Source: Octopus sinensis (Eukaryota). From it: DNA of 64,000 bases. This document shows positions 2,466 to 62,106 of the stretch, piece after piece. Under the pieces are notes generated by a model that searched no databases, was not told the DNA's origin, and saw nothing but the letters and a program-made list of their open reading frames with translations. Where the stretch lies: positions 21,576,001 to 21,640,000 of the forward strand of contig NC_043005.1 in the NCBI RefSeq assembly GCF_006345805.1. The letters run 5' to 3'. Each line of letters starts with the position of its first letter. The stretch's first letter is position 1. A program made the translations under genes and the position numbers.

Positions 2466-2699
2466 TCGATAAAGGGCCTGTAATGCTGAAAAAGGTTAGC
2501 ATACCAAGCAAGGCTACTTTAGGACAGCTTAAGGATAAGACCTTAAAGCAGTGTGATGAAGCTTGTCAACAATATATAGGATGTAACGCTTATCAGTACA
2601 ATGATGAAACTAAATTATGTGATCTGAGTAATGTGACTCAATTGAATGATGAACTTAAACCCAGTGATGGAAATTGGGATATATACTTGGTTAACCTAG
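2466..2699 (+). CDS. Exon A1: PAN/Apple domain, subtype A (234 nt, phase 1-1)
   Basis: ttcag|TC GAT AAA...AAC CTA G|gtcagt; DKGPVMLKKVSIPSKATLGQLKDKTLKQCDEACQQYIGCNAYQYNDETKLCDLSNVTQLNDELKPSDGNWDIYLVNL; C-x3-C-x5-C-x11-C PAN core. Confidence 0.9.
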
Positions 2700-2762
2700 G
2701 TCAGTAGAGTGTTTCTATTTCATTTATTGTTTGCATACCTGTATGTATTCACATATACGTGT

Positions 2763-2764
<2 letters not shown>

Positions 2765-2794
<30 letters not shown>

Positions 2795-3190
2795 TTAGCG
2801 TCCGTTTTCCATGCTAGCATGGGTTGGACGGTTTAACTGGGGTCTGTGAAGCCGGAAGGCTTCGTCAGGCCCAGTCAGATTTGGCAGTGTTTCTACAGCT
2901 GGATGCCCTTCCTAACGCCAACCACTCCTCGAGTGTAGTGGGTGCTTTTTACGTGCCACCTGCACAGGTGCCAGACAGAGCTGGCACAACGGCCACGAAT
3001 GGATGGTGCTTTTACGTGTCACCGGCACAGGGCCAGCTGAGGCTGGCAACGAACACGAGCGGATAGTGCTTTTACGTGCCACCGACACGGGGCCAGACAG
3101 AGCTGGCAAACGGCCACGAACGGACGGTGCTTTTACGTGTCACCAGCACGGGGGCCAGCCGAGGCTGGCAACGAACACGGACGGATGGTG
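2765..3190 (-). mobile_element. 3' end of RTE-type LINE (or partner SINE) with (GAT)n tail and four internal ~60-64 bp tandem units
   Basis: (cat)n then tttagcgtccgttttccatgctagcatgggttggacgg; the same terminus ends the RT-bearing copy at 30200-31456. Confidence 0.75.
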
Positions 3191-3235
3191 TGTGCATATA
3201 CATATATACATATCTATCTGTCTATTCATCTAAAC

Positions 3236-3554
3236 ATGTATTATATATATGTATTAGAGGGAAACCACTATGTGGACACTTATATGCTAGAAATAGATCT
3301 GCTACAGTCTCACCACCAAGAAACGTTCTCAAGAAAAATTTAGTAAAACAACCAAAACATAATCGAGCAAGACAAAAGAAAAAGTAATAAAAATATGGAT
3401 TATTACTTTTTCTTTTGTCTTGCTCGATTACGTTTTGGTTGTTTTGCTAAATTTTTCTTGAGAACATTTCTTGGTGGTGAGACTGTAGTGGATCTATTTC
3501 TAGCATATGGGTGTCCACATAGTGGTTTCCCTCTAATATATATATATAATACAT
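3236..3554. repeat. Long palindrome/foldback element (~150 bp arms, ~10 nt loop)
   Basis: gtattagagggaaaccactatgtggacac...gacaaaagaaaaagtaataa is mirrored by ttattactttttcttttgtc...gtgtccacatagtggtttccctctaata; a one-arm relative lies at ~11935-12180. Confidence 0.9.
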
Positions 3555-4659
3555 TTTTACTGAACCTTCAGTTTTTTTATGCTAGACCACTGGTGTGAAA
3601 TCGATATTAATTAAATTAATATCTAATTTCTCACTCTCATTTAAATTTTAAAATTACATCTAAACATGTATATACAGACACATATGTATGTATATAGATA
3701 CATGTGTACATATATGCATATATATATATATAATATATATATATATAAATACAGTGTACATTTAAACACACAAGAGGTATCCATCATAGGACTACCTACA
3801 CGCTAGAGAGAACAGTTAAATTCCAAACCACTATTAGGGATAAAATTTCGAAGGGAAGGAAAAATAAAAAGACTCTTCTTTCCTCACCACCCTTCTACTA
3901 ACATCAGTACTTTATCAGCCACAGTATTGCAATACAAAAGGCATAGCTAGCATTCTCACTTCTGGAATGTAACTCAAACATACTTACCACTTAACTAATT
4001 AATCAGTATTATTTTTTTATAAACAATTGTTGTCTACTACACCCTCTTCTGGTAGATGCAGCAAGGACAGACTGATATGGTTTATCTGTTGGCAACATCC
4101 ATACAAACATATTCAGAATCAGAATGCTCTTCCCATCCTCCTGTTCCTTCTTGTCCCCCATTCCACGTCTTTGGAGTTAACACAGTCAATGTAGGTACAT
4201 TGAAAGAATTAGGTGTTGTGATGAGATTGTTGAGATGCAAGAGCAGATTCATGTAGATGTGTTGTACGTTTAAGAAGTAAGGTGGAGGGTAGCTATCATC
4301 ATCACCATGATAGGCTAGATGATGTAGGCATATTTCTAGATGAAAACTGACTGGATAACATCAAGGAATTCAGAATGTGTGATAGGATACATATGCTTAA
4401 ACTAGTTTTGCAAAGTAGTGCAACAACTGTACTACATCTTATCAAATTACTTTAAAAACAAACTTTTCATTTTTTAATGATTTGACCAACATTTTATAAA
4501 ACAATATTTTGTGCAAAACCAAAAATATGACACCATAGTCATGACACCAACTTGAACTTCTAACTTGTTTCTTGAGGTCTCTGGGTGAAACTTGGAGTCA
4601 ACTTGTACAAATACAAAGCAAAAGCCAACCATATAATGATAATAATAATAATAATAATG

Positions 4660-5114
4660 ATAAGCTGAAAAGAATGACTAGCTTAGTACTGTAGGCTGCA
4701 GGTAGTAAGCCTGCTATGCATGTAAGACTCTAGAAGCTCCAATAAAACCTGTGATAAAAAAATAATGATAATAATTATAATAGTCAAGAAGGAAGGTAAA
4801 AAGATAGATAAATACAACCCTCTTAAGTACGAAATAGTCCAGCTATGGAAAATGAAGAAGGTGAAGATAGTTCCACATATTGTTGTGTCCTTGAGAACAG
4901 TATCAGAAAGCATCAAGAGAAATATAAAGAGAATTGGAATAGAGTGCCCAGTAGAACTGTTACTAAAGTTTTGTCCCCTTTGCATGGCCAGAATAATCAG
5001 GAAAGTATTAGATAGCTGAAAAGAAATGGATAGCATGATACTGTAGGCTGCCAGTAGCAAGCCCACTACACATACAAGTCTCCAGGAGCTCCAACAAACC
5101 CTGTGATAAAGAGA

Positions 5115-5148
<34 letters not shown>

Positions 5149-5790
5149 TAATAATAATAATAGAAAGAGGATGTAGAGCATATAGATGGAAAAGCAGGGC
5201 TCAGATATTAAGGAACAGATGTGTGGCAGCAGAAATGAAAGTCGTGAGTGAGTGTAGCAAGGTGGCCCAAAAGCACTACAAAAGGAGGCACAATAATGTG
5301 GCTATGTTCTTCTACTGGAGGCTATGTGAAAAGTACGGCCTGAACAGAACACAGAAATGGTATGTACATGAACCAGAAGGAGTGACTGAGAACAAGGGGC
5401 ATAAGATACTGTGGGATTTTACAATCCAATATGACACCCTAATTGAGGCTTGGAGACCAGATATTGTAGCAGCAGGTAAAGGAAAAAGGAAACCAAGATC
5501 ATAGATATTGCAATATCTGGAGATGCATATATAAATGACAAACAGCTAGAAAAGATTGAAACGTACAGACTACTAAATGACAAAACTGCAAGAATGTCGA
5601 CTATGAGGAGAGTGTCTGTCATTCCAGTTGTTGTAGGGGCATTCGGAGCACTAACAACCAGGTTCAAGAAATACATCAAAGAAATTGAAATTGACAAGAG
5701 AGCAGAGCAAGCCCCAAAAAAACTGCTCTGTTGAGGACAGCTAGGATTTTGAAAATGATACTTGGATGTTGAATGTCCCCCACGATAAAT
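4660..5790 (+). mobile_element. Stack of 5'-truncated R4/Dong-like (RLE-type) non-LTR retrotransposon ends separated by (TAA)n
   Basis: ORFs 4765..5019 (KYNPLKYEIVQLW...IIRKVL) and 5103..5504 (RRHNNV...KILWDFTIQ...RPDIV); the 3' UTR occurs twice (4660-4760 and 5010-5115). Confidence 0.8.
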
Positions 5791-6103
5791 AAAAACCAAG
5801 TATCTAAGCTTATAATGTGCAGAAAGATACTTCTGACAGCAGGCTGCTGTCTGCTCTCACAGAATCTACCAGATCAAACAAGACTGAACGTTCTGAGTTT
5901 CCTTTTCTTCATAGAGCTTACAAGATATTTCACCAGGATCCTTAACCATTTCATTTCATGTGATATATTTATGTCTGTATGTGTGTGCAGATGTCTTCAG
6001 TTTGTTTCAGTCATAATCTTTTATTCTAAATTTATTATCTCCTCATTCTCACCCTCCTCCTGACATATTCACTATTGATATCAATTTCTATTATCACTTT
6101 CAG

Positions 6104-6274
6104 TTATTACAAAAGTTAACTGTGAACCTCCAAAAGATGTTGCTGGTGCAAAGAAATCCTACACTACCACCACCTATAAATCTGAAGTGACCTACACCTG
6201 TCCAGGAGGACAAAAGTTGAAGTCAAAATGTAAAAATGACAATAAATGGACTCCAGTTGCATCCAGTTGCAAAG
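6104..6274 (+). CDS. Exon S1: short Sushi/CCP domain (171 nt, phase 1-1)
   Basis: ttcag|TT ATT ACA...TGC AAA G|gtaatg; ITKVNCEPPKDVAGAKKSYTTTTYKSEVTYTCPGGQKLKSKCKNDNKWTPVASSCK; C-PP, V-x-Y-x-C, C-x5-W-x6-C. Not in the ORF track. Confidence 0.88.
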
Positions 6275-6394
6275 GTAATGTAAATAGGTTCTCTTCTGTT
6301 GTCTCTGTCTAGGTATTTTTGTTTAATTTTTTTATTAAATATCTTTGTTAGAAGAATAATGACTGAATCCATGACAATTTCTATGATATTTGTG

Positions 6395-9490: not shown

Positions 9491-9562
9491 TTTTTTTTCT
9501 ACGTTAGAAATCATTGTTTTTTTTTGGTGTTTACATTTGTCTCAATCTTCCTTTAATTCCAG

Positions 9563-9802
9563 TTTCTAAGATCTATTTTGTGAAAGTAAAAAGTGCCATT
9601 CTGGATGTACCTGGAAAAACTTTGATGAGTAAGAAAGATGTAACAGCAGAAGTCTGTGCAGAAAAATGTTTGTCTGACAAAAATTGTTTATCATTTGAAA
9701 TAAAGGGAAAAAGTGGAAAATGCTATTTATCAAAGGAAACTGCAGCTTCCTCCAAGAAAATAAAAGCAGCCAAAAGCAAAGATTACTACCAACGAGTAAA
9801 TG
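9563..9802 (+). CDS. Exon B1: Lys-rich PAN/Apple domain, subtype B (240 nt, phase 1-1)
   Basis: ttccag|TT TCT AAG...GTA AAT G|gtaatt; SKIYFVKVKSAILDVPGKTLMSKKDVTAEVCAEKCLSDKNCLSFEIKGKSGKCYLSKETAASSKKIKAAKSKDYYQRVN. Confidence 0.9.
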
Positions 9803-9925: not shown

Positions 9926-9965
<40 letters not shown>

Positions 9966-11927: not shown

Positions 11928-12360
11928 TTAAAATAATAAGGGTGAAAAATTGAATATTAATTTGATTAATATCAATTTAAAACCAGTGGTATAGCTTATT
12001 TAAAAATTTGAAGTTTCAGAAAAAATTACATTACATATATATAAAAAGGATGACCTGTAAGTGGACATCCATTATGCTAGAAGAAGATCTGCTATGGTCT
12101 TACCACTAAGAAAGGAATGTTCTCAAGAAAATTTAGCAAATGCCAGAATGTAAGCGAGCAAGATAAATGAAAAGATACAATATATAGATTAATGACAAAC
12201 CAAGTTTCGTTGTTAATGCTTATGTAATCATTTATGTAATCATCTGCAAACTCATCAGTGTGATCGTCTTTACAAATATAATTTGCAGAACTATACATGA
12301 GATGTCTGCATGAGTTTGAACATTGTGTGTATATATATATATATATATACATACATACAT

Positions 12361-12584
12361 CATCATCATCATCATTTAACGTCCGCTTTCCATGCTAGCA
12401 TGGGTTGGACGGTTCAACTGGGGTCTGGGGAGCCCGAAAGCTGCACCAGTCCAGTCAGATCTGGCAGTGTTTCTACAGCTGGATGCCCTTCCTAACGCCA
12501 ACCACTCCGAGAGTGTAGTGGGTGATTTTATGTGCCACCGACACAGGTGCCAGGCGAGGCTGGCAAACGGCCACGCTCGGATGG
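12361..12584 (-). mobile_element. Young RTE-type 3' end / SINE copy
   Basis: Same terminus as 2765-3190, with one internal unit. Confidence 0.75.
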
Positions 12585-12635
<51 letters not shown>

Positions 12636-15188: not shown

Positions 15189-15359
15189 CTTATGCACGTA
15201 TTGACTGTGGGCCTCCCAAAGACATTGTTGATACATTAAAGTCCTACAAAACTACTGCCTATAAATCTGAAGTACTCTATACTTGCTCAGATGGAATACA
15301 ACTAAAGTCAATATGTCAAAAGGACAACAAATGGACTCCAGTAGCATCTTCCTGTAAAG
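15189..15359 (+). CDS. Exon S2: short Sushi/CCP domain (171 nt, phase 1-1)
   Basis: tttcag|CT TAT GCA...TGT AAA G|gtaaca; YARIDCGPPKDIVDTLKSYKTTAYKSEVLYTCSDGIQLKSICQKDNKWTPVASSCK. Confidence 0.88.
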
Positions 15360-18038: not shown

Positions 18039-18278
18039 ATCCTCAGCTCCATTTTGTGAAAATAAAAGATGCAGCTCTGGATGTACCTGGGAAAAAATTG
18101 TTGGATAAGCAAGATGTAACAGCAGATGAATGTGCAGAAAAGTGTCTGTCTGATGAAAGTTGTTTATCATTTGAAATAACCAAAGGAAATAGAAAATGTT
18201 ACTTATCAGAGAAATCTGCAGTCACCTCCAAGAAATTAAAGGGAAACAAAGACAGAGATTACTATCAACGAGTAAAAC
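18039..18278 (+). CDS. Exon B2: PAN/Apple domain, subtype B (240 nt, phase 1-1)
   Basis: ctttag|AT CCT CAG...GTA AAA C|gtaatt; PQLHFVKIKDAALDVPGKKLLDKQDVTADECAEKCLSDESCLSFEITKGNRKCYLSEKSAVTSKKLKGNKDRDYYQRVK. Confidence 0.9.
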
Positions 18279-20994: not shown

Positions 20995-22242
20995 TTGGGT
21001 CATCCCATAAATAATGCGGTTTTTTATACTTCTTTTATTTTTCAAAATTAAGATAAAGTTTTTTTTAAATCTAAAATATACTCTCTTTTTTTACAATGCT
21101 CTTCCATTTTATGATGTTCTTTATCTGATAGACTTGCAAGGCCTCTCTTCCAAAATTCACCTATCCATGTTAAAAAAATACTCCTCCAATACTGTTCTGA
21201 CCTTGTCTACAGAATTCTTATTTTTTTCTATCCAAATGATTTTGAAGGCTGCAGAATAAATGATAATCAGATGGGGCAATGTCCAGCAAATATGGTGTGT
21301 CGGTCATCTTCACTGTATGTGGCCAAGCATTCCCTTATGGAAGAACACCTTTCATCTTGAAACCAATGATGGTTGTTTTCCTTCTAGTGCTGACTTAAGC
21401 CACTCAAGCTACTTACAATAGATCTCTTTTGTTATCATTTTGTTTGAGTTTAAATGTTCAAAGTGGACTCAGCCTTTCATATCCCACTAAATAGCTAACA
21501 ACACCTTACATGGGTGAGACCTCTAGCCTGGAGTACCAGTGTTTCTCCTTTCTCTACCCACCGTCTTCAGCTTTTGACATTTTTATACAGAACCCATTAC
21601 TCGTTGCCAATCACTATTCAAAAAAGGCTCATTCATGAGTTATGACAGCAAAGAAGAGCACACATTCACTTCCTGCATGCGATTAGACTCAGAAAGTTTA
21701 CAAGGGACTCATTGACTCAATTTACTAACTTTTCTAATGACACACAGGTGGCCAGGTGTCAATGAATGGTTGAATGGCTAAATCCAAGCTTTTCTGCTAG
21801 TTCCACAACAGTTACAATGGGATTTTGTTCCACCAAGGTTTGCAGAGCATCCTCATCAAGCTTTACATATTTCAGGATGAGGCTCATCTTCTAGGCTGTA
21901 ATTTCCGGCTCAGAATTACTAGAGCCACCATTGACTCTGACTTATTCATATTGTCCGATCCCCATATAATGCATTAATATCCTTTCACTTTCCATTGCAT
22001 TGTTGCCTTTATTGAACTCATAATGCAAAATATACTGAATAAGCTTCTTTGTCACTTTCATTATAGCTTCAAAAAAATAACTGGCAAAATCAACTTGCAC
22101 TCTTCAAAACTTTCACTAAGAATTTGTACAAGGTAAAATTACTACCTGCTTTTATAGCTTGATACAGGTAGTTTACCCCACTCCTCCTCCAACTTCTAGT
22201 TCATGCAATTGAAAAAATTGCATTATTTATGGGATAACCCGA
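20995..22242 (-). mobile_element. Full-length decayed mariner with TIRs and TA target sites
   Basis: TA|ttgggtcatcccataaataatgc ... gcattatttatgggataacccga|TA; the reverse complement matches the transposase at 53854-55073. Confidence 0.9.
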
Positions 22243-26797: not shown

Positions 26798-27745
26798 CAG
26801 TAGTTTTATTTTTATAGCGTGCTTTCACTTCACTACCGAGCGCAGCTCTGTGTGCCTTGGGTATGTGCTGTGATTTGTTGTGATGCTCTGATGGTTATTG
26901 TATGGAAAGTGTTCTGCGTAGGATGTGTGCAGTGCCTAGTAGTGCAATTTTCTGTATGTTATTTGTGTTTGTAAGTCCTAGTGTTTTAGTTATGTATTTG
27001 TCTGAATATTTTTTTATCATGCCTAATGCACCTACTATGATAGGAATTGTTTCTGTTTTCAGATTCCACATTCTAGTTACCTCTATTTCCAGGTCTTTGT
27101 ATTTTGAGAGTTTCTCCATTTCTTTTAGAGACACATTGTCATCTGCCGGTATTGATACATCAATTAGAAAGCATTTTTTTTCTTCATGATCTCTGACAAC
27201 TATATCTGGTCTGTTGGCCTTAATTTCTCTATCTGTGTGTATCGGCATATCCCAGAGTATGGTAGCTTTCTCGTTTTCTGTGACCTTTTCTGGTGTGTGC
27301 CTATACCATCTTTTTTCTGTTGTTATTCCATAATGTTGGCATAGCTTCCAATGTATGTAGGTTCCAACTCTGTCATGTCTGTGAATATATTCCTTCTTAG
27401 CCAGGACTGGGCAGCTAGAGATAATATGATTTATTGTTTCTTGTCCATCTCCACATATTCTGCAGTTACTTGTAATATTTCTTTTCATTACATGTTTTTG
27501 GTAATTTCTGGTGGGGAGGCTTTGGTCTTGTGCTGCAATTAAAAATCCCTCTGTTTCTGCTTTGAGTCCTGAGCTTCTCAACCATTGCTGGGATTTTTCT
27601 TTGTCTATTTTTTTTGCGTTTAGTTTAGTGCAGTATTTACCATGAAGGGGCTTTTCTTGCCATCGTTTTATCATGGTTCGTTGCTGTTCTAATTTTAGTT
27701 TGGATTTCATTTGTTTTATAGCTTTTGTTGTTTCTTCATCATCTT
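26798..27745 (-). mobile_element. 5'-truncated R4/Dong-like non-LTR retrotransposon with uninterrupted C-terminal ORF, in (TAA)n
   Basis: 271-aa ORF 26895..27710 with CCHC knuckle (CRICGDGQETINHIISSC), RHD and PD..D-xxK restriction-like endonuclease (RPDIVV...LIDVSIP...KLSKYKDL); (TTA)n on both sides. Confidence 0.9.
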
Positions 27746-27784: not shown

Positions 27785-27834
<50 letters not shown>

Positions 27835-27840
<6 letters not shown>

Positions 27841-28760
27841 CATCAAGTTGGCGGAATAATTGGCATACCAGGCAAAATGTTCAGTGGCATTTTGTCCGTC
27901 TTTTCATTCTGAGTTCAAATTCCACAGAGGTTGACTTAGCATTTTATCCTTTTGGGATCAATGAAATAAATACCAGTTATGCACTGGGCTAAATGTAATT
28001 AACTATCTCGTCCCTAAATTTCAGGCCTTGTGCCTATAGTAGAAATGATTATTATTATTCAGGTGGCAAGCTGGCTGAATCATTAGCATGCTAGGCAAAA
28101 TGCTTAGCGGCATTTCGTCCATCTTTACATTTTGAGTTCAAATTCCACTGTGGTCAGCTTTGCCTTTCATCCCTTCAGAGTCAATAAAATAAGTACCAGT
28201 TGAGTATTGGGGTCAATGTAATCAACTTTTCTCCTCCCACAAAATTGCTGGCCTTGTACTAAAAGTTTGAAATTTTTATTATTATTATTATATTATTATT
28301 ATTATTATTATTATTCAGGCATCAAGTTGGCGGAATAATTGGCATACCAGGCAAAATGTTCAGTGGCATTTTGTCCGTCTTTTCATTCTGAGTTCAAATT
28401 CCACAGAGGTTGACTTAGCATTTTATCCTTTTGGGATCAATGAAATAAATACCAGTTATGCACTGGGCTAAATGTAATTAACTATCTCGTCCCTAAATTT
28501 CAGGCCTTGTGCCTATAGTAGAAATGATTATTATTATTCAGGTGGCAAGCTGGCTGAATCATTAGCATGCTAGGCAAAATGCTTAGCGGCATTTCGTCCA
28601 TCTTTACATTTTGAGTTCAAATTCCACTGTGGTCAGCTTTGCCTTTCATCCCTTCAGAGTCAATAAAATAAGTACCAGTTGAGTATTGGGGTCAATGTAA
28701 TCAACTTTTCTCCTCCCACAAAATTGCTGGCCTTGTACTAAAAGTTTGAAATTTTTATTA
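27835..28760 (+). repeat. Near-identical 479 bp tandem duplication, each unit with two tRNA-type SINEs separated by (TTA)n
   Basis: catcaagttggcgg at 27841 and 28320; aaagtttgaa at 28262 and 28741; B-box-like gagttcaaattcc in each SINE. Confidence 0.9.
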
Positions 28761-29386
28761 TTATTATTATAAATATTATTATTATCATTATTATTATTAT
28801 TATTATTTTGTAGGTAATAATGTAGAAATATAAGCTACTGAAATTTTGAACAAATATTACAAAACCATCTGGTGCATTGTTTTATAAATGGACAGTATGT
28901 TACAGAATCTAGAAAATTACTTTTCAGCTTAGGACGCACTTCAAAGAATGAATATGTATTCTAGTACATCAGCTTGTCTGAATGTTTCAGTTGTAGGTAA
29001 TCCCTTTGTACATCTGTCTTCTGAAGGCCTGCTTTTCTTTAAGATTGAATGGCTATAGCACATGATATGTTTAGGGGATTGTCAATCCTACAAAATACAC
29101 CATGAGACGAAATGTGTACAAATATATTGTCTACACTGTATGTATGGAGACAAACTTTCAGAAACAAGTTAGAAAAATGTTCTATAACTCTGATTGAGAC
29201 ATCATTTTATTGATCAATTATTTTCTTTTTATTTCGGTCATATGACTGAGGACATGCTGAAGCACTGTTTTCTAGCCAAAGAAATTGACACCTGCACTTA
29301 TTCTTTGTAAGCCTGATCTGAACTCTAAGTTACAGAGACATAATCACACCAACATCAGGGAGACGGACACCAAGACACACATATAA

Positions 29387-29749: not shown

Positions 29750-29983
29750 TTGAGGACAAGCCTGTTGTGATGAAAAAAGTTAGTGTACCAAGAAGTGCTT
29801 CTCTAGGAGAGCTTAAGAATGTGAACTTAAAGGAGTGTAATGAAGCTTGCGATCAGTATTTGCGATGTAACTCTTATCAGTACAATGTGAAAGATAAGTT
29901 ATGTGATCTGAGTGATGCGACTCAGTTGAATAATGAACTTAAACCCAATGATGGAAGCTGGGACTTATTTATAGTTACCCCAG
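29750..29983 (+). CDS. Exon A2: PAN/Apple domain, subtype A (234 nt, phase 1-1)
   Basis: tggcag|TT GAG GAC...ACC CCA G|gttagt; EDKPVVMKKVSVPRSASLGELKNVNLKECNEACDQYLRCNSYQYNVKDKLCDLSDATQLNNELKPNDGSWDLFIVTP. Confidence 0.9.
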
Positions 29984-30202: not shown

Positions 30203-31452
30203 ACTACAGAGGTATCAAACTGCTGGATCAGGTAATGAAAGTCACAGAGAGGGTCATAGCCCATCTCATCAGGAGAGAGTCTGTTTAGATGAGATGTAGT
30301 TCGGTTTTGTGCTGGGTAGAAGCACCACTGATGCCATATTCATGGTTCGACAACTGCAGGAGAAATACCTAGCCAAAGATAAACCCCTATACTTAGCTTT
30401 TGTGGACTTTGAGAAAGCCTTTGACTCGGTCCCCCGATCCCTTATCTAGTGGGCGATGCAGAAACTGGAGATTGACGAATGGTTAATAAGGGCTGTACAG
30501 GCCTTTTACAGGGAGGCTGTTCGTAAGGTTAGGATTGGCAATGAGTACAGTGAAGAATTCCGGGTAGAAGTTGGTGTCCACCAAGGCTCAGCCCTCAGTC
30601 CCCTTCTGTTCATCATAGTCCTCCAGGCAATAACAGAGGAATTTAAGATGGGTTGTCCCTGGGAGCTCCTCTATGCTGATGACCTAGCCCTCGTAGCAGA
30701 ATAACTACTGGAACTAGAGAACAAATTTCATGTGTGGAAGCTAGGTTTAGAATCAAAAGGCCTTAGATTTAATGTAGCTAAGACCAAAGTTCTAGTAAGT
30801 AGGAAGGCAAACTCACCACACACAGGATGGCCTGCTGCGCTTGAGGAGACCTATTGTGTCAAGTTCATCAACATCAAAATAAAAATCGTATGCATATTGT
30901 AGTTGTGATACCCGTGCTGGTGGCACGTAGGGCCTCAAAGAGGAAATGACGAAGACCAAGACCCCTGAGATATGCTGTCACTGTGAAGACCTGACAAATT
31001 AAGTGAGTTCATGGCTTGCAGGGCGGCCTGCTGTGCTAACCTTGGGATCGTAGAGTGACCTGCTGTTCTTGAGGAGACCTATTGAGTCAAGTACGTCAAC
31101 ATCAAAATAAAAATCAAATGGAAATTGTAGTTAAGACACCCAAGCCGGTGACACATAAAAAGCACCATCTGAATGTGGCAGATGCCAGTGCCACCTGACT
31201 GGCCTCCATGTCTGTGACACGTAAAAGCACCAACTGATTGTGGCTGTTTGCTAGCCTGCTCTGGCCCCTGTGCCGGTGGCACGTAAAAAACACCCACTAC
31301 ACTCATGGAGTGGTCGGTGTTAGGAAGGGCATCCAGCTGTAGAAACACTGCCAAATCAGACTAGAGCCTGGTGCAGTCTCCATGGCTTACCAGACTCTGG
31401 TCAAACCGTCCAACCCATGCTAGCATGGAAAACAAGTGTTAAACGATGATGA

Positions 31453-31456
<4 letters not shown>
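30200..31456 (+). mobile_element. RTE-clade LINE, internally deleted, RT core + 3' UTR + (GAT)n tail
   Basis: ORF 30456..30704 contains GVHQGSALSPLLF and LLYADDL; ends catgctagcatggaaaacaagtgttaaacgatgatgatg. Confidence 0.85.
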
Positions 31457-31489
<33 letters not shown>

Positions 31490-35703: not shown

Positions 35704-35871
35704 TTGTCACAAAAGTTAACTGTGGAGCACCAGAAGATGTTGCTGGTGCATCTAAATCCTATGATACTACTACCTATAAATCTGAAGTGATCTATACTTG
35801 TCGAGATGGAGAAGAATTAAAGGCAACATGTAAAGAGAATGAGAAATGGGCTCCAGCAGTGTCTTGTAAAG
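35704..35871 (+). CDS. Exon S3: short Sushi/CCP domain (168 nt, phase 1-1)
   Basis: ttccag|TT GTC ACA...TGT AAA G|gtaatg; VTKVNCGAPEDVAGASKSYDTTTYKSEVIYTCRDGEELKATCKENEKWAPAVSCK; a one-codon deletion keeps the frame. Confidence 0.88.
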
Positions 35872-38666: not shown

Positions 38667-38906
38667 CTACCATGATCAGTTTTGTGAAAGTAAAAGGTGC
38701 AATTCTGGATGTACCTGGGAAAACATTGTGGAGTAAGAAAAATGTATCAGCAGAAGCCTGTGCAGAAAAATGTTTGTCTGAAAAAACTTGTTTATCATTT
38801 GAAATAACAAAGAGAAGTCGAAAATGTTATTTATCAAATGTGGCTGCAGCTTCCGTCAAGAAAATGAAAGCAGCCAAAGACAGAGATTACTATCAACAAG
38901 TAAAAT
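38667..38906 (+). CDS. Exon B3: Lys-rich PAN/Apple domain, subtype B (240 nt, phase 1-1)
   Basis: ttctag|CT ACC ATG...GTA AAA T|gtaatt; TMISFVKVKGAILDVPGKTLWSKKNVSAEACAEKCLSEKTCLSFEITKRSRKCYLSNVAAASVKKMKAAKDRDYYQQVK. Confidence 0.9.
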
Positions 38907-44330: not shown

Positions 44331-44564
44331 CTGATGATGATCTTTTTACATTTAAAAAAACTGCCATACCAGGGCATGATACATTTGGTCAGATTAAAGG
44401 AGTCACTTTAAAGGAGTGTGATCGTGCTTGCCTTCAAATTCCAGGATGTAAATCATATGAGTATCATGCAAAAAAAGAATTCTGTAATCCATCTAATGAG
44501 ACTCACCTGACTTATGACCTTAAACCCAACAAAGATGGATGGGATATACATATCATGAACCCAG
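44331..44564 (+). CDS. Exon C2: PAN/Apple domain, subtype C (234 nt, phase 1-1)
   Basis: atctag|CT GAT GAT...AAC CCA G|gtcagt; DDDLFTFKKTAIPGHDTFGQIKGVTLKECDRACLQIPGCKSYEYHAKKEFCNPSNETHLTYDLKPNKDGWDIHIMNP. Not in the ORF track. Confidence 0.9.
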
Positions 44565-46599: not shown

Positions 46600-48499
46600 T
46601 GAATATATACACAATACTTCCATATCATAACATTTCTCATGACTGTATTTTCTGTGAATCTTTTCTTAGGCTGGTTAATATGTCTTTTGTATTTGAAAAT
46701 TTTACCTTTTTTAGGAATATCGTTCTTCCAATTTGTTTAAATATTATAATGTCCTCCCAGCTTTCTTTATCATATCTGCATGACCTAGTTTCTTGGAAGG
46801 TTTATACTCCATCTTGATATCATAGTTTAATAATATTGTACCCCAGTGTTGTAACCCATTTCTGGTATGGGTAGAAATTCCCTTTTTTGATACAATAATT
46901 GATAATAATGGACAATAATGAGTTTCTAGATGAAAACTTCTACTGTGCAAAAAATTGTTGAATTTTTCATGGCAGAAATGATTGCTAGAGCTTCTTTTTT
47001 GATTTGACTACAATTTTTCTTTGCTGATATCAGAGAACATGAGTCATGAACCACTGCCTTCATGTTACCATCTTTATATTTAAGTAGTATTACTGCTCCT
47101 GTATCATACTCAGAAGCATCTGAAGCTTCAATAATCTCCATTGTAGGATCGAAATGCAGTAACAACAAATCAGATATATTTTTTCTTCTTCAAACACCTT
47201 TTGACAGTTTTCTGATCAATTCTTTTCCTTATCCTTTATCAGCAGATTATTCGGTGGAAGCTACACCTTATGCATATTCAGAATATAATTTTGGTAATAA
47301 TTTGCCAGTCCTAAAAATGCTTGTAAGATCACTGTATTATTCGCAGGGGGAATATTTTTAATTGCATCTGCCCTCGATGGATCTGGTCAATGTCCCTTTC
47401 TGTCAATGATTTGTCCTAAATATCTTATTTTCTGGAAGAAAAATTCACACTTTTCTTCACTCAAAGTAAAGCTGTAATCCCTAATTTTTTGAAATACATA
47501 TTTTATGTGCTCAACATGTTGATCCCTATATTCACTTTTAATGAGTATATCATCCACATATGGAATTGCGAATTCACAGTCTGCTAACATTGCATCCATA
47601 ATCTGTTGAAAAAACACTGGTGCAAATTTTAAGGCAAATGGTGACCTGTTGTATTTATGCAGTCATTTATGCAGTCAACTCATTCATTTTGTATTTCTCA
47701 CTCTCTGTTAAACACTCCAGCATAGGTGCCAAAATCTTCATCATCTCTTTTGACCAGCATGTATTGAACAGAGAACCTTTTTGCAAGCCAGTATTGAACA
47801 GAGAACTCCTTTCTCTGAAAATTTTCCATAAACTATTGTTCCATCAAAACAAACTCACCTGGTTTCTTTGACAGAATATAATTACTATATTTTTCAGGTT
47901 CAGTAGAGGATAAATTTCTTAAAATTACAAATGTTTTTCTCATCGGACCAACTGTTAAACACTTCTTTGAAGATTTCTTCATATCTATGAAAATATGCAG
48001 AGAAGGTAGTACCTTCTTCTGGTTTATAGCTGAATTTTTCAATTGAGTCTGCTACACTGTCAAGCAAGTACAAACCTGAAGTATTTTCAAACTCCCTCAG
48101 CATTAATTCCAGCAATTATTGGTTTAGTTGTTGTTGCTGTTGTAGTTGCTGCTGCTACTAATTGCAATGGCAACACAGAGGCCAATAAGTTATCCATGTT
48201 AAATGATTCTTTGTTTAGTTTCATACTAAAATGTAATTTAAACATCCAATGCAAGCTTTGAACAACTCATCGCCACTTTTATATCCTTGTCGTGGATATA
48301 TACTGTAATAAAGCAATGGGGAAGGAAGTATACACACGATGCACTACTATTACTATTATATGAGATTCAATGCTCTATATCAAAGGATCATAGTGAAGTG
48401 CTACCAACACAAACTGCCAATTTCTCACAGTTCTTCAATTTATAACAATGAGTGAGTCACTTTAGTCACTTGGGGGTTGGTCGGAATCCTTCCACAACA
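46600..48499 (-). mobile_element. Deleted Ty3/Gypsy LTR retrotransposon (5' LTR, PBS, gag, RT, RNase H fragments)
   Basis: YVDDILI...KCEFF...YLGQII (47387..47617); SDASEY..GAVI...SQIKKEALAII (46926..47168); minus-strand LTR starts TGTTG at 48499; PBS-like TGGCGATGAG at 48276-48267. Confidence 0.85.
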
Positions 48500-48652: not shown

Positions 48653-48823
48653 CTTACAACAAAATAGACTGTGGAACACCAAGAGACATTGCTGGTGCAT
48701 CAAAGTCCTACAATACCACCAAATATAGATCTGAAGTGATCTACAAATGTCCACGGGAAGAAAAACTAGTGTCGAGATGTGAAAAGGACAAAAAGTGGAC
48801 TGTGGTAGATTCTGCTTGTGAAG
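48653..48823 (+). CDS. Exon S4: short Sushi/CCP domain (171 nt, phase 1-1)
   Basis: ttccag|CT TAC AAC...TGT GAA G|gtaaaa; YNKIDCGTPRDIAGASKSYNTTKYRSEVIYKCPREEKLVSRCEKDKKWTVVDSACE. Confidence 0.88.
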
Positions 48824-50788: not shown

Positions 50789-50959
50789 CTTTTGAAGAAA
50801 TCGACTGTGGAAATCCAAAAGACATTGCTGGTGCAGACAAGTCCTATGAAACTACTACCTATAAATCTGAAGTGACCTATACTTGCCCAGAGGGAGAACA
50901 AATAAAGTCAATATGTGAAAAGGACAACAAATGGTCTCCAATTGTGGAAACTTGTAAAG
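50789..50959 (+). CDS. Exon S5: short Sushi/CCP domain (171 nt, phase 1-1)
   Basis: tttcag|CT TTT GAA...TGT AAA G|gtaaca; FEEIDCGNPKDIAGADKSYETTTYKSEVTYTCPEGEQIKSICEKDNKWSPIVETCK. Confidence 0.88.
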
Positions 50960-53819: not shown

Positions 53820-55075
53820 TTGGGTTATCCCATAAATAATACTGTTTTCTCAATTGCATGAACTAAAAGTTATAGAGGAAGCTATAATGGGAGTAACAAA
53901 AGAGCTTATTTGGTATATTTTGCTTTATGAGTTCAATAAAGGCAACAACGCCATGGAAAGTGCAAAGAATATTAATGCAATATATGGGGATCGGACAATA
54001 AGTGCAAGCCAGTGTCTATGGTGGTTCCAGAAATTCCAAACCCAAAACTACAGCCTAGAAGACAATCCTCATCCTGGAAGATCTGTAGATCTCAACAAGG
54101 ACGTCCTACAAACCCTGGTGGAACAAAATCCCATCGTAACTGTTGAGGAACTAGCAGAGAAGCTTGGATGTGGCAAGTCAACCTTTCATGAAAACCTGTA
54201 TGCCATCGGAAAAGTCAGCTAATTGGGTCAATGGGTTCCTCGCAAACTTTCCATGTCTAATCGATCACACAGTATGAATGAGTGATTTTCTTGCTGTCTC
54301 ATTTCACAAATGAATGTTTTTGGGACTGAATAGTGACTGATGATAAGAAATGGGTTCTCTATGAATATGTCAGGCACTGATGAGAGTGGGTAGGGAAAGG
54401 AGAAGCACTGCCACCCCAGGTGAAAGAAGATCTTCACCCATATAATGTAGTGAAATATATAGTCTGTACAATGTGTTGATTTGGTTGCATGTATGTTATT
54501 ACAAGAGTTCATACAGAGATGAAAGAATAAATACAAGATCTATATATTTACTACACCCACATAAGGTGTTATTACATGTTTGGTGGGATATAAAAGGTTT
54601 AGTCCACTTTGAACTTTTAAACCCAAATCAGATGATAACAAAGGACATCTACAACAAGCAGCTCGAACAGCTTAAATCAGCACTAGAAGGGAAACGACCA
54701 CATTTGGTTTCAAGATAATGCTCTAACACATACAGTGAGGATGACATTCCAAAGGCTGGAGCAGTTTGAATGAGAAATGATGCCCAACCCGCCATATTCA
54801 CTGGACATTACCCCATTTCCTTATCGTTTATTCTGCAGTCTTCAAAATCATTTGAACGGGAGAAATATGAATTCTGTAGATGAGGTTCAAGCAGTAATAG
54901 AGGAGTATTTTTTGTCACAGACAAGTGAATTCTGGAAGAGGGGCCTTGCAAGTCTACCAAATAGATGGAAGAGCATTGTGGAAAATGAAAGAGAGTATAT
55001 TTTAGAGTACAAAAGAACTTTGTTTATCTTAAATTTGAAAAATAGAAGAAGTATAAAAAAAAACACATTTTAAGT
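53820..55075 (+). mobile_element. Decayed mariner, same family as 20995-22242, opposite orientation
   Basis: TA|ttgggttatcccataaataat left TIR; ORFs 53854..54222 (HTH, QWVP), 54473..54718 (KVLLHVWWD) and 54777..55073 (PPYSLDITP); right TIR eroded. Confidence 0.88.
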
Positions 55076-55960: not shown

Positions 55961-55961
<1 letters not shown>

Positions 55962-55993
<32 letters not shown>

Positions 55994-56080
55994 CAGCAGC
56001 AGCAGCAGCAGTAGTAGTAGCAGCAGCAGCAGCAGCAGTAGTAGCAGCAGCAGCAGTAGTAGTAGCAGCAGCAGCAGCAG
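55962..56080. repeat. Compound (AGT)n/(AGC)n microsatellite
   Basis: Directly visible. Confidence 0.97.
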
Positions 56081-56699: not shown

Positions 56700-57480
56700 A
56701 TTGACATGAATCTTCAAAGAGTTTGATATAACCATAAGAATTACTACCAATCTAACTACGTTCAACAAAGTGGACATTACATTAGAATTAAAGTCTGGTA
56801 TCTTACAAAAAGCCTGACAAGGAGAACAGACATCTTCATTTGAGCTCCTTCTTCCAAGCTATAGTAAACCATTACATAAGAGAATCTCCAATTCATCCTC
56901 AAATTGAGATATTTGTGACAGCATCTAAAGATAGCTGTTAGCTAGGATTGGCTTTTGTGAGAAGTATAATAAGAGTATCTTCCACCAACACACTCGAAAA
57001 ATATTTAGAAAGAGGATAATTTGATTCAGTTCATCCTTCAAACTAAATGTCACCATGAACATAACAAGAGAATTTTTGTCTTCCATTTGACACAATTTCT
57101 CAGGCATGCATAAGTATCACAAGCTAGTTAATGCACATTGTGTTAAGTTTCATGTCTAGACATGACATATAGCATTCTATGCTACAGCAGGAAAATACAC
57201 TTATACAACCTTTATTGCAGACATCAACTTGCGTCTGTCAACATCACTCCACAGAATTCTGCCTTTTTACGACAGTAGTTTATAGAACAAACTTACTCCA
57301 CCTGATGAATTCCTAATGAATTTCATGGGACTCTTTCAGGGGAGTTTGAATCAGCATATATACTCCTTCAAGTTCATATATAGGAAAATTTCACCTCTCT
57401 TGCTCTGTTTTATTTGGGAAGTTCAGGAACAGGGAAATGATCTTCCCATATAACCTCAAGTATACTCACCACACCTACTC
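56700..57480 (+). mobile_element. Decayed Penelope-like element, paralog of 10175-10630
   Basis: Shared tttctcaggca...atcacaagct...tgttaa block. Confidence 0.6.
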
Positions 57481-57792
57481 CCTAATCAGAAAGCAATCTT
57501 TGTTTCACTGACTTGGCCATAGACTTAAAACAGTTTGTTGGGGGAAGATACAACTCCAGGATGCTCACTGTGAAACAGCACTGTGTATTTTAGGGTGCAG
57601 CACTTATAATGAGAAATGAAGAGAGAAACTATTTTGTGCTCTCACACTAACTGTGGATTTTATGCCATTATTGGGCCTTTGGCACTATATCAAATCATAC
57701 AAAGAGTAAAGCTGTAAATCAGGTTCCATTTCAAACACTAAAGTGCTCAAATGCACCTTGCAGAAAATTTGGAATATAATATTTATGCTTAA

Positions 57793-60700
57793 CTAGCAAA
57801 GATACCCGGCATTGCCCGTGTTACATACAATTGAAGAATTAGACTTTTCTGTTATACTTTCTCTAATGAACTGGAATATCTATGTTTCGATTTTCATCAA
57901 AATTGCAGATGAAGGTTATTTCCCTCTTCACACACTCCCAAAAAATTGTAATCGTCCCATATGTATCCCATGCTACTGATTTTTATGTGCATATTCCAAA
58001 ATTCCAGTCTTATTGAACATGCTAAAAAGATATTGCTCCTGAAAAATGAAGGTCATGGAGCTCTAAAATGTGAGAGTTAAGGCCCCTGTTGGGGGTGGCA
58101 TCTTAATGTCAACCAGAGAAGTTATCTCTCCATTTCTCCTCTCTGTCTATGTCACTCCTTTGTGTTCCATCTTTTACGGTACGTCGCCAATCTTTACAGT
58201 TACTGGCAACTGCTTCCCAGTGGGTAATATTGATGTTGCAGGCATTCATGTCTGTTTTGCAAACATCCTTGTATCATAAGAACAGTCTTCCCACAGACCA
58301 AGTGCCCCTCGCAAGCTCTTCGAAGAGTATGTCCTTGGGGATTCTGCCATCTTCCATACAGGTAACATGTCCATCCATCTCATACGTCTTTGTGTGAGGA
58401 GTGCAAACATGCTTCGTATTCCTGCTTGCTTGAGGACATCTTTGTTGGGGACATGATTCAGCCATTTAATGTGAAGGATTTTCTGGAGGCAGTGCAGGTG
58501 AAAGATATTTAGGCAACGCTCTTGGCGTGTGTATGGCGTCCAAGTCTTACTTGGACATGCCTGGTAAATCTTCCTTTTTGTGGTCTTGGTTAGCTTATTG
58601 TTGTCCCATGCCTGTTTCGAGAGTTGGGCCATCACAGCAGCTGCCTTGCCAATGCGTAAATTGAGCTCAGCATCAAGGGATAGGTTGTAGGTGACGGTAG
58701 AGCCAAGATAGGTAAACTTCTCTACCTCCTGTAGTATGTGGTCTCCGATATGTATGTTTCAGATGTCCGATGGAACCTGACCCATGATGTTGGTCTTCTT
58801 GAGGCTGATAACTAAGCCAAAGTCGCTACATTCTTGCTCAAAACAGTTGATGAGCCTTTGTAGGGCTTCTTCTGTGTGATACCAGAGCGGCATCATCAGC
58901 AAATAGCATCACCTTGATGAGGACGCTTCTGATTTTGGTCTTGGCATGCAGATGCGAGAGATTGAACAGTTTCCCGTCACTTCTACTGTGCAGAAACACT
59001 CCATCATCTGATGTCTCAAAGGCATGTGACAGCAGCAGTGAGAAGATGCCAAATAATGTAGGAGCGAGGACACAACCTTGCTTTACCCCGTTTTTTATTT
59101 GGAAGGCGGCTGATGTTGAACCATTGTGCTGTATGGTGCCTTGCATAGCATCATGGAAAGATTTGATGATCCTCAGCAGCTTTGGTGGACATCTGATTTT
59201 TTGGAGCAGGATGAAGAGGCCTTTTCTACTTACCAATCTACTTGTCCAATCAATGAAGGCCATATATACTGGCCTTTTCTGCTCTCTGGACTTCTCCTGA
59301 AGTTGGCGTATGGAGAATATCATGTCAGTAGTTGATCTGCTTCTTCTAAAGCCACACTGCGATTCTGGATAAATTCGAGAAGCAAGCAGTTGTAGCCTGG
59401 ACAGGATAATGTGAGCAAAAGCCTTTCCAACAGTTCTTAGAAGAGATATTCCATGGTAATTGTTACAATCACCATGGTCAACTTTGTTTTTGTAAAGTGT
59501 AATGATATTAGCATCCCACATATCCTGAGGGACCGTACCCTCTTCCAAGACTGTGACACAGAAGCTCATGAAGGTGCCGAAGCAGGATGGTGTTTTTTCC
59601 GGTTTTGATGATCTCTAATGGGATACCGTCTTTTCCCGGAGCCTTGTTACTTGCTAGAGAGTTGGTGAGCTCTGCTATAGATGGCAAGATCTTGACACCC
59701 TCGATTGCAACCTCACCTACTGTGGTCTCTCATGAGTAGAGATCCTGGTGGTACTCCACCCATCTATCCCTTTGTTTGCTTTGGTCCTTGATGAGATCTC
59801 CAGTAGTTGATTTCAGAGGGGCTGACTTGGTTGTGGATGGATCGAGGGCCTTCTTCAAACCGGCATACATCTCACGGGTGTCACCACTGTCAGCAGCTGA
59901 CTGGATACTCTGACAGATTTCCTGCCAATACCTATTTGCACAGCATCTGGCAGTCAGTTGGGTTTTATTTCTTGCTTTTCTGAGTTCTTCGTGTGACTTT
60001 GTAGAAGAATCACTCTTGTATTGCATCAGAGCTGCACGCTTTGCTTCTATAACTGTTTCCAGCTTTGAGAGCCCAGCACTGAACCAATCTGGGTTTTGCC
60101 TTTCTCTCATGCTGAAAGTCTCTATTGATGTGGTATACAAAGCTTCCCTGATATAATTCCACCTACTTTCAGCAGAGGACATTGGGCAGCTACTGAGGGC
60201 AACCTTGATAGAAACAGCAAAACATTTTCGCAGAGTAGGGTCCGAGGTTCTGGCAGTGTTAATGCGTGGTCGGCCCATTTTCTTGAAGTGATGGACTTTT
60301 TTAGGCAGAATCCTCACCCTGCTTCTTATTAGTGAATGATCTGTGTCACAATCTGCGCTCTGGTAACTATGGGTCAGTTGAACAAAATTCAGAAAGGATC
60401 TTCGTGTAATGATGAGATCCAGCTGATGCCAGTTGTGAGATCTTGGATGTCTTCAAGATGACTTGTGGGATGTCTTGTTGGCAAAGAATGTGTTGGTGAT
60501 GCACATATTATGGTATGTGCTAAATTCAAGTAGTCTCTGACCATTGTCATTCACGTTGCCAATACCAAAACACATACACTTACATATATACATACATATA
60601 CATACAGTTGATTTCTTTTAGTTTCTGTCTACAAAATCCACTGACAAGGCTTTGGTTGGTCTCAGGCTATAGCAGAACACACAAGCCAAGTTACCACACA

Positions 60701-61245
60701 GTGGGACTGAACTGGAGACCATGTGTTTTGGAACCAAGTTTGTTACCATACAGCCATACCTGCACCTATGTATGTGTAGGTGTGTGTGTTTGTGTATGTG
60801 TGTATGGCAGTATATATGTATGCATTATATTATATGTATATATATGTGTGCATATTACATGTACATCTATATATATACATCTAGACATACATGTATACAT
60901 ATACATGTATATCTATAGAAATATATCTATATATATACATGTATACATATACAAGTATATATATACATGTATATATATATATATATATACATCCATATAC
61001 ACACAACAGAGAGATGCTTTTGTTTCACTTTTAACACGTAATACTGAAATAGTGGAGAAGATGTGATATTGCTGTGGGCTCGCCCTAGGCATGAAGTTAA
61101 ACATTTCTTTTGCCCATGACACTACATGGACCCTAAGTAAGGCATGTGTAAAATTTGAATGAAATTGGTTGTGTAGTTCTCACGTTTTAGGGATTCACAG
61201 TCAGATAGACAGACAGACACACATTCTCAGTTTTATATATATAGA
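57793..61245 (-). mobile_element. Non-autonomous Helitron split by a nested RTE LINE, a SINE and microsatellites
   Basis: Minus strand A|TCTATATATATAAAA...(GACA)n...CACGGGCAATGCCGGG hairpin...CTAG|T; the empty paralogous site atgcttaa|ttcct at 1221-1233 shows no target-site duplication. Confidence 0.8.
58050..60570 (-). mobile_element. RTE (BovB-like) LINE: APE endonuclease C-terminus + RT, frameshifted
   Basis: NGQRLLEF...HQLDLII...DTDHSLI; ORF 58838..59569 with QCGFR, GVKQGCVLAPTLF and MLFADD; ORFs 59730..60317 and 58246..58635. Confidence 0.92.
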
Positions 61246-61869
61246 TTCCTTTAGATTTAGCACACCATTTTCATGCTAATGTTACATATAATATTTATTG
61301 ATATAATACCATGTAATATAATATAAATGTATAAACAAAATCACAAATCAATGAATAGCAAGGTACAAATGTAAATGGTTCCTAACTTTCATCTAATTTG
61401 TCTTTACACACAAATTCATTACCATCTTTTTCTTATTTTGCTGATATTTGGAAAAATGTAAATTTTTATTATGTTTGAGAAATTTATTATGATTACGAGT
61501 GCTGAAAAACACCAATTACAACTGATAAATTGGCTGAGCTATGGTGTAGAGCAGAAATAAACAGAATTGGATCTGTACACAATTAAAGGAGAGAAGTACA
61601 AATGTATTATCTGCAGCTTAATTATGGAATCAAGGTTTCAAATAAGTCTGAAGGTGTTCTACAAATCATATGCATTCTGATTAGGGTGTCATTTTGCAGA
61701 TCAATTATTTGTTTATAATAAATCGACCATTTTCAAAATTATGCATCACATGCTTTACAGTATTTAATATATGCTAGGAAATATGTGTGTCTGCATGTGC
61801 ATTTGTGTGTGTGTGTTTGTATGGGTGGATGTGTATAAAATAAATTTCTTGTTTTCTATTTTGTTTCAG

Positions 61870-62106
61870 TCGATAAAGGGCCTATTATGCTGAAGAAGGT
61901 TGGGATACCAAGCAAAGCTACCTTAGGACAGCTTAAGGATAAAACCTTAAAGGAGTGTGATAAGGCTTGTCAACAATATGAAGGATGTAACTCTTATCAG
62001 TACAATGATGAATTTAAGTTGTGTGATCTGAGTAATGCGACTCAGTTGAGTGATGATGTACTTAAACCCAGCGATGGAAAATGGGATATATACTTAACTA
62101 ACCCAG
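61870..62106 (+). CDS. Exon A3: PAN/Apple domain, subtype A, close paralog of A1 (237 nt, phase 1-1)
   Basis: tttcag|TC GAT AAA...AAC CCA G|gtcagt; DKGPIMLKKVGIPSKATLGQLKDKTLKECDKACQQYEGCNSYQYNDEFKLCDLSNATQLSDDVLKPSDGKWDIYLTNP; one-codon insertion relative to A1. Confidence 0.9.

Follow-up and report, generated by a model that had tools for sequence, protein, structure and literature searches.

In a 64,000-nucleotide stretch of the Octopus sinensis genome (contig NC_043005.1, positions 21,576,001 to 21,640,000; hereafter the window, numbered from its first letter), we identified 14 one-domain coding exons, nine for PAN modules and five for Sushi (CCP) modules. With a probability of about 0.7, we interpret these exons as an internal stretch of a giant, Octopus-specific coding array derived from an amplified cephalopod GON-domain protein, and encoding a secreted multivalent binder. 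The exons themselves, their splicing and the continuation of the array on both sides of the window were observed directly or in gene models of related species, and we infer secretion of the product, the giant transcript or transcripts, the binding mechanism and the tissue.

Modules were located in the window by six-frame stop-to-stop scans combined with cysteine patterns, and exon bounds were set at the AG acceptors and GT donors that proved conserved when the segments were aligned together with their flanks. The scans recovered nine open segments resembling PAN and five resembling Sushi modules, all stop-free and all on the plus strand, and neither extra nor decayed copies were found when the exon peptides were searched by tblastn against both strands of the window. 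The lengths of all 14 exons are divisible by three and all introns are in phase 1 (exons of phase 1-1), with length varying only in S3, which lacks one codon, and in A5, which has an extra one. The PAN modules fall into two types: type A has 78 codons, a near-neutral charge and a glycosylation sequon after the fourth cysteine, whereas type B has 80 codons and is strongly basic, with a mean net charge of +7 over 85 unique copies. From 5' to 3', the exons are:

2466-2699, plus strand: A1, type-A PAN, 78 codons, phase 1-1, sequon NVT; PAN_1 33.2 bits
6104-6274, plus strand: S1, Sushi/CCP, 57 codons; Sushi 23.6 bits (cut-off 20.7)
9563-9802, plus strand: B1, type-B (basic) PAN, 80 codons; PAN_1 41.1 bits
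11517-11750, plus strand: A2, type-A PAN, sequons NMT and NAT; included in the AlphaFold model
15189-15359, plus strand: S2, Sushi/CCP; included in the AlphaFold model
18039-18278, plus strand: B2, type-B PAN; included in the AlphaFold model
29750-29983, plus strand: A3, type-A PAN, usual family sequon lost (SDAT)
35704-35871, plus strand: S3, Sushi/CCP, one codon short compared with the other Sushi exons
38667-38906, plus strand: B3, type-B PAN, sequon NVS
44331-44564, plus strand: A4, type-A PAN, sequon NET
48653-48823, plus strand: S4, first Sushi of a double-Sushi unit, sequon NTT
50789-50959, plus strand: S5, second Sushi of the double-Sushi unit; Sushi 23.9 bits
55394-55633, plus strand: B4, type-B PAN, sequon NVT, closing a 13-exon higher-order repeat; PAN_1 35.3 bits
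61870-62106, plus strand: A5, type-A PAN, one codon extra, opening the next higher-order repeat

The initial annotation, made from the letters of the window, had proposed 14 one-domain exons that were stop-free, with intact cysteines and only whole-codon indels, and both the scans and the splice sites bear this out. Its outer limits (2466 and 62106) coincide with splice-defined exon ends, the spacing C-x3-C-x5-C-x11-C is present in each of the nine PAN modules, and its list of sequons agrees with ours. Spliced together, the exons yield a stop-free product of 994 aa, with 56 cysteines (four per module) and eight N-x-S/T sequons (NVT, NMT, NAT, NVS, NET, NTT, NVT, and NAT). Given the base composition (35.7% GC, stop frequency of 0.070 per codon), the probability of 995 stop-free codons is about 4e-32, so that chance is excluded.

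Moreover, the spliced product aligned without gaps to residues 6-999 of the Octopus vulgaris gene model P0161 (4087 aa), with 991 of 994 residues identical; hence, an independent annotation joins exactly these exons, in support of the splicing that had been proposed. The three residue differences from P0161 (GCA_951406725.2) are L/P (2697-2699), D/N (~29968) and R/G (~38829), in codons of A1, A3 and B3, respectively; A1 is the same in both up to its final residue. The 2.4 kb that precede A1 do not contain the 'MNSK' start of P0161, and the stretch covered by the window appears unannotated in O. sinensis.

Regarding domain identity, Pfam assigned nine stretches of the spliced product to PAN_1 (PF00024; E 2.6e-66), with a match in all nine PAN exons, and further stretches to Sushi (PF00084; E 9.5e-13). 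Single exons exceeded the curated cut-offs, with 23-41 bits against 21.4 for PAN_1, and 23.6-23.9 bits against 20.7 for Sushi. An AlphaFold model (mf8f4f92768bc) was built for S1-B1-A2-S2-B2 with an alignment of 22 paralogous units, in which the four PAN cysteines were invariant in 22/22 units; residues C6, C32, C42, W48 and C55 of the Sushi exons were likewise invariant in alignment. The model displayed one helix plus strands per PAN module, with a mean predicted local distance difference test (pLDDT) score of 84.4 and a predicted template modelling (pTM) score of 0.54; the predicted folds of individual modules are confident, whereas the inter-domain geometry is not reliable at that pTM. Foldseek searches against the PDB returned the factor XI/prekallikrein apple domains, Toxoplasma MIC4, Sarcocystis SML-2, the HGF N domain and the plasminogen PAN domain, and in PDB sequence searches the CCP modules matched CR2, CR1, DAF and MCP, and the A-type PAN modules matched MIC4 and SML-2. 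The PAN and CCP identities of the initial annotation are therefore supported by profile hidden Markov models (HMMs), predicted fold and comparison with known structures. In this context, the third disulfide of apple domains of the factor XI/prekallikrein type, which bridges the two termini of a six-cysteine domain, is absent; with four cysteines each, the PAN modules belong to the HGF/plasminogen N-domain type, and not to the six-cysteine apple type.

Among the paralogous exons of the window, mean pairwise ratios of nonsynonymous to synonymous substitution (dN/dS; Nei-Gojobori) were 0.65 for A, 0.47 for S, and 0.83 for B modules, with single pairs ranging from 0.27 to 1.13. Maximum-likelihood omega values (GY94), estimated from 24-35 exon copies of the window and Octopus bimaculoides, were 0.59, 0.61, and 0.71, respectively. 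All cysteines, the CCP tryptophan, and the DYYQ and FE motifs were invariant, and the conserved sequon was kept in 79% of 121 unique A copies and in 58% of 85 B copies. At the level of sequence, the scaffold is strongly constrained and the remaining positions are near-neutral or diversifying. Consequently, the purifying selection previously suggested for this system is only part of the picture: it describes the reading frame, cysteines, core residues and sequons, and not most surface positions, which, with an overall omega of 0.6-0.7, appear nearly free or diversifying.

The same figures bear on the view that the array is evolutionary debris, a recent segmental repeat whose exon-like pieces are unexpressed and have not yet decayed. 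A fairly high omega (0.6-0.7) would fit such a view, as would exons that are just 5-10 points better conserved than their intron flanks; however, paralogous exons differ by 13-38% in DNA, yet 0/14 carry a stop or a frameshift (p ~4e-32 from composition), and a scan of roughly 100 modules in three genomes found about 95% of them to be full-length. Adding the invariant cysteines, tryptophan and core residues, the retained sequon, and an omega below 1 in all three module types, we find undecayed debris barely credible, and retain the reading of a coding array.

The window order is ASB ASB ASB ASSB A, in which a complete 13-exon higher-order repeat is followed by the opening exon of the next one, and the (ASB)3-ASSB period is also visible in the architecture strings of the long O. 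bimaculoides model. A1 and A5 share 82% amino acid identity, whereas adjacent A exons share only 40-58%, which marks A1 and A5 as members of successive higher-order repeats; within the O. vulgaris model, a second copy of the higher-order repeat is 74% identical over ~1000 aa. In this regard, the repeated PAN-CCP-PAN triplet of the initial annotation gives way to an ASB-ASB-ASB-ASSB unit. Between paralogous modules, homology reaches 0.3-1 kb into the flanking introns, denoting array growth by genomic tandem duplication and not by retroposition. After each B exon (e.g., from 9803, 18279, 38907 and 55634 onward), the first ~15 intron bases are conserved among paralogues (GTAATTAT...) and translate as 'NY(F/S)L...'. 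This intron start is conserved even in the cuttlefish orthologue (locus L005, 7103-7408), its first codons being shared from cuttlefish to octopus, and public models sometimes end by read-through into it.

Beyond the window, the array could be followed in two other Octopus genomes. In O. vulgaris (chromosome OX597823.1), an NDUFV1-like gene is followed downstream by seven adjacent array models, arranged head to tail on a single strand; the models continue on both sides of the part equivalent to the window, as the initial annotation had anticipated. In order, they are:

NDUFV1-like gene: 471 aa; gap to the next model, 7.2 kb
P0166, the 5'-most array model: 2247 aa, spanning 259 kb; gap to the next, 2.9 kb
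P0156: 4470 aa, spanning 416 kb; gap to the next, 4.5 kb
P0006: 861 aa; gap to the next, 2.9 kb
P0003: 857 aa, spanning 75 kb; gap to the next, 0.5 kb
P0163: 3597 aa, spanning 266 kb; gap to the next, ~11.5 kb, with a transposon-derived minus-strand gene
P0161, the window's model, automatically named "SVEP1-like": 4087 aa, spanning 291 kb; gap to the next, 5.4 kb
Last array model, directly downstream of P0161: 4283 aa, carrying the GON domain

Together, the O. vulgaris models sum to at least 20,400 aa, in agreement with the very long protein that had been predicted. We estimate roughly 290 modules (235 parsed in six models plus an assumed ~60 in the 4283-aa model) over about 1.7 Mb, a figure that uses assumed spans for P0006 and the 4283-aa model. 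In O. bimaculoides, the array occupies at least 88.25-88.82 Mb of CM046610.1 and ends in model P0004, followed by a CACHD1-like gene. The GON domain (PF08685) occurs once, at the 3' end of the array (E 6.3e-33 in O. bimaculoides P0004), and is absent from the window; in each species examined (O. vulgaris and O. bimaculoides), only the last array model carries it. The precomputed family list of the 4283-aa model contains one extra unnamed family.

The array is thus already present at NCBI, in fragments, as 'uncharacterized' or misleadingly named 'SVEP1-like' models. Searches of the literature for this architecture or for the model accessions found nothing about the array, and no characterized protein with this architecture turned up. 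The initial suggestion of an undescribed system stands insofar as no characterized match was found, and needs qualification insofar as NCBI models exist and the short relatives are already named as GON-domain proteins; what appears to be undescribed is the scale, that is, a ~100-fold, Octopus-specific amplification to an array of ~1.7 Mb and ~290 exons.

The breaks between the annotated models look artificial when compared with the underlying sequence. Array models begin at an internal methionine, in the middle of a domain, and several end in translated intron (e.g., '...CKGNINGLFLVLSAYVILF' and '...KVKRNYSLGF'); no signal peptide was recognized in any array protein model examined, and the split points are not the same between species. 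In O. bimaculoides, the 'intergenic' gaps contain full-length, stop-free modules that carry on the A-S-B cycle. Furthermore, along a 95-kb stretch of O. vulgaris (OX597823.1:24.09-24.19 Mb), the genome reads ASSB(ASB)5, whereas the annotation omits four intact A and B modules (L006 40222, 61622, 85499 and 89679), which explains the apparent ASAS irregularities of the O. vulgaris models; these omissions could represent alternative splicing or annotation error. Taken together, mid-domain starts, differing splits and modules within gaps favor one or a few very long transcription units.

Alternatively, the array could be a tandem cluster of separate genes, seven in O. vulgaris and at least six in O. 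bimaculoides, each with its own multi-module protein. The region has indeed been split by two independent annotation pipelines, the models are 0.5-11.5 kb apart with a minus-strand transposon-derived gene in one gap, and the existence of a short, complete octopodid relative (GON-Abd-1, see below) means that family members can be independent genes. We consider such a cluster rather unlikely, since the models examined show the missing signal peptides, internal starts and, in some cases, intron-translated ends already described, the splits vary by species, in-phase intact modules continue the A-S-B order across the gaps, and GON is confined to the last model of each species.

In addition, the symmetric phase-1 exons might function as cassettes for combinatorial skipping, producing many isoforms and a diversified recognition repertoire, in either a single gene or a cluster. 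Any subset could be skipped in frame since all exons are multiples of three with phase 1-1, intact genomic modules are left out of O. vulgaris models (ASAS patterns), and omega is high, the scaffold being fixed while the surfaces vary. However, phase 1-1 is the general rule for extracellular modules, the skips may be annotation errors, and the orthologous O. bimaculoides models are regular, making a cassette system distinctly improbable. In its most far-reaching form, the whole ~1.7-Mb array would be one transcription unit, amplified ~100-fold and with exons also used combinatorially, for one secreted protein of at least 20,000 aa that would act as a hyper-multivalent glycan/protein binder in saliva, mucus or another secretion; this version we judge unlikely on balance, and the reading that we prefer is the more general one of a giant array transcribed as one or a few very long units.

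Regarding distribution, an exhaustive, profile-free search of 1.84 billion representatives with O. bimaculoides P0002 as query returned matches of 55-74% identity (Octopus only) and then dropped straight to Sushi-only matches of ~31% (SVEP1/CSMD type), and length-matched searches recovered only models of O. vulgaris, O. sinensis and O. bimaculoides. According to these searches, large arrays are restricted to Octopus, with three species found, upholding the earlier proposal of a lineage-specific system. Small relatives were identified in other cephalopods:

GON-SepT-2 (R4G7D8), squid Sepioteuthis australis: 503 aa, signal peptide-B-A-S-S-GON
GON-Abd-1 (R4G2C1), octopodid Abdopus aculeatus: 465 aa, signal peptide-B-A-S-GON
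P0050 (locus L005), cuttlefish Acanthosepion pharaonis: 359 aa in a 5'-truncated model, B-A-SS-GON at the locus
P0042, Argonauta hians: 356 aa, signal peptide-B-A-B-A

No further module was present in the 7 kb upstream of the cuttlefish B-A-SS-GON locus. When parsed with HMMs, the short and giant forms share the module cycle, BAS(S) in GON-Abd-1 and GON-SepT-2 and (ASB)n in the array. In a maximum-likelihood tree of 55 B-A pairs, squid and cuttlefish were followed by Argonauta, then by GON-Abd-1, and then by the GON-proximal array pair, placed outside a clade of the remaining array pairs (ultrafast bootstrap, UFBoot, 73-92), which indicates that a small secreted cephalopod protein gave rise to the array through internal amplification of its B-A-S core. 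On this phylogenetic basis, all array units descend from a single B-A-S-type unit, and the array belongs to the already named cephalopod GON-domain family. A search for a signal-peptide exon like that of GON-Abd-1 around the 3' terminus of the array in O. bimaculoides gave no match, in a sequence that mixed several loci. As for more distant PAN pairs, a Logan contig of 1060 nt (P0139) contains one open reading frame (ORF) in which a Tc1/mariner transposase C-terminus is fused to a contiguous B-A pair; this pair is only 32% identical to the octopus modules, and belongs to a distant relative with no B/A intron, or to a transcript.

The closest architecture is that of GON-SepT-2 and GON-Abd-1, with which the array shares the order basic B-type PAN, A-type PAN, CCP, as well as the sequon of the A module and a C-terminal GON; at 465-503 aa, these proteins contain a single B-A-S(-S) unit and have a clear signal peptide, whereas the array repeats the unit about a hundred times. 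MIC4 and SML-2, which bind galactose-type glycans in a multivalent manner, also have tandem PAN/apple modules, lie closest to the A-type PAN in sequence among PDB entries, and rank among the top structural matches; however, they come from an unrelated lineage, lack CCP and GON, have 2-6 apple modules, and share 18% identity. The closest single-domain match is the N-terminal PAN of HGF/plasminogen, with a root-mean-square deviation of 2-3 Å over 76-82 residues, 24-28% identity (HGF N domain), and the same four-cysteine core without the extra apple disulfide, but in these proteins the PAN is single and unrepeated, with kringles and a protease-like domain after it. Basic residues of the HGF N domain mediate its binding of heparin.

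Tandem PAN modules (at least 20) are also found in lophotrochozoan proteins of secreted type, CAD5126322 and CAD5122242 of the annelid Dimorphilus gyrociliatus; in contrast to the array, these have no interleaved CCP or GON, carry SUEL-lectin and F5/8-C domains, and share 21-24% identity. Dumpy, a giant apical-matrix protein of Drosophila, consists of hundreds of small repeated modules (EGF/DPY) and a ZP domain. The array resembles it in scale and logic, with ~20,000 aa of small disulfide-bonded modules and one distinct C-terminal domain, as an analogy and not a homology.

Other candidate families were discarded. SVEP1/polydom is likewise a very large extracellular protein with CCP repeats; however, VWA, EGF/EGF-Ca, pentraxin and HYR domains were absent by Pfam from the window product, P0004 and P0166, and true SVEP1 matches through CCP only, at ~20-30% identity, so that the automatic name, given to models of both O. 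vulgaris and O. sinensis, is misleading. Expression of 'svep1' in hemocytes, as given in an O. vulgaris brain atlas, is not attributable to the array locus. A relative of ADAMTS-9/-20/GON-1 was also rejected, as P0004, GON-SepT-2 and GON-Abd-1 consist of PAN, Sushi and GON only, with no reprolysin metalloprotease, disintegrin-like domain or thrombospondin type-1 repeats before GON. PAN-ZP apical matrix proteins of the LET-653, NOAH and NompA type were set aside, with no ZP match in any model scanned, and a complement regulator was rejected as well.

We propose that the array began with a small, secreted protein of cephalopods, signal peptide-PAN-PAN-CCP-(CCP)-GON, whose PAN(B)-PAN(A)-CCP core was repeatedly duplicated in tandem in the genome, and that the resulting product would be a secreted, N-glycosylated, disulfide-rich, long and flexible string of independently folded modules, with a single GON domain marking its C-terminus. 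With A-type PAN (near-neutral), CCP and B-type PAN (strongly basic) in alternation, it could bind glycans or proteins in a highly multivalent manner. Polyanionic glycans may be bound by the basic B modules, in analogy to the HGF N domain and heparin, and neutral glycans or proteins by the A modules, in analogy to MIC4 and SML-2, on a conserved scaffold whose surfaces would be free to diversify. The posterior salivary gland could be the tissue involved, a lead that comes from the short relatives only, and roles in mucus, apical matrix, egg coat or immunity are possible.

Several points weigh against this proposal. The region is annotated as seven separate models, with a ~11.5-kb gap that contains a transposon-derived gene, and a single mRNA is a deduction from the sequence; moreover, the N-terminus of P0166, the 5'-most model, is unlike a signal peptide. 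For a structural protein, an omega of 0.6-0.7 is high, and part of it could stem from a relaxation of constraint where the array is redundant; at a pTM of 0.54, the AlphaFold model is no reliable guide to inter-domain geometry. GON-Abd-1 is short even though it comes from an octopodid, so separate genes may encode the short and the giant form, and the salivary lead may not transfer to the array. The 'GON-' names reportedly come from the transcriptomes of coleoid posterior venom glands described by Ruder and colleagues in 2013, a study listed by PMC4619613 as its reference 18. This origin, read from database names, is a lead to a tissue and not evidence for the array.

Between the exons, the window (35.7% GC) consists of AT-rich, intron-like DNA with microsatellites and broken transposons. 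The only ORFs in these intervals are broken transposon ones (reverse transcriptase, RNase H, Mos1 helix-turn-helix, and zf-RVT), the longest of 271 aa, in accordance with the degraded surroundings reported in the initial annotation, and searches of the window for tRNA genes and Rfam RNAs gave no match. The 271-aa zf-RVT ORF is intact (26895-27710, minus strand) and stands beside a 99% tandem duplication with a period of ~480 bp (27792-28795), which may be a young retroelement tail. A Mos1/mariner-type transposase remnant (53854-55073, plus strand; HTH_48, E 6.5e-16) lies just upstream of B4, and a related inverted mariner copy with 74-76% identity (21020-22070, minus strand) lies in the long B2-A3 intron. 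In the B4-A5 intron, RVT_1 ORFs occupy a block with a higher GC content of 0.45 (58838-60317, minus strand), and separate reverse transcriptase and RNase H fragments of the long terminal repeat element type were detected in the A4-S4 intron (46926-47617, minus strand). Finally, an interspersed repeat of ~300 bp recurs in several introns with 80-88% identity (2777-3084, 12330-12585, and 31146-31487 on the minus strand), with a sub-repeat at 2942-3190; it translates as '...FLQLDALPN.NHS...' and looks like a short interspersed nuclear element (SINE), and ARAGORN detected no tRNA-like part in it.

If the array is expressed as proposed, it would show, in an extreme and datable form, how a gene grows when exon cassettes are amplified: squid, cuttlefish and an octopodid still have the five-domain ancestor, and the Octopus version is ~100 times larger. 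It would also add a new architecture, PAN-CCP-PAN repeats capped by GON, to the giant extracellular proteins, and, if a single transcription unit proves true, the product would be among the largest extracellular proteins known in animals. For users of transcriptomics and proteomics, it matters that octopus annotations fragment this locus, misname it 'SVEP1-like' and skip intact exons. An invariant scaffold combined with an omega of ~0.6-0.7 makes the array a natural test case for diversifying selection within one repeat protein. In brief, the array is a concrete candidate for octopus-specific biology, for example in saliva or venom, mucus, or adhesion.

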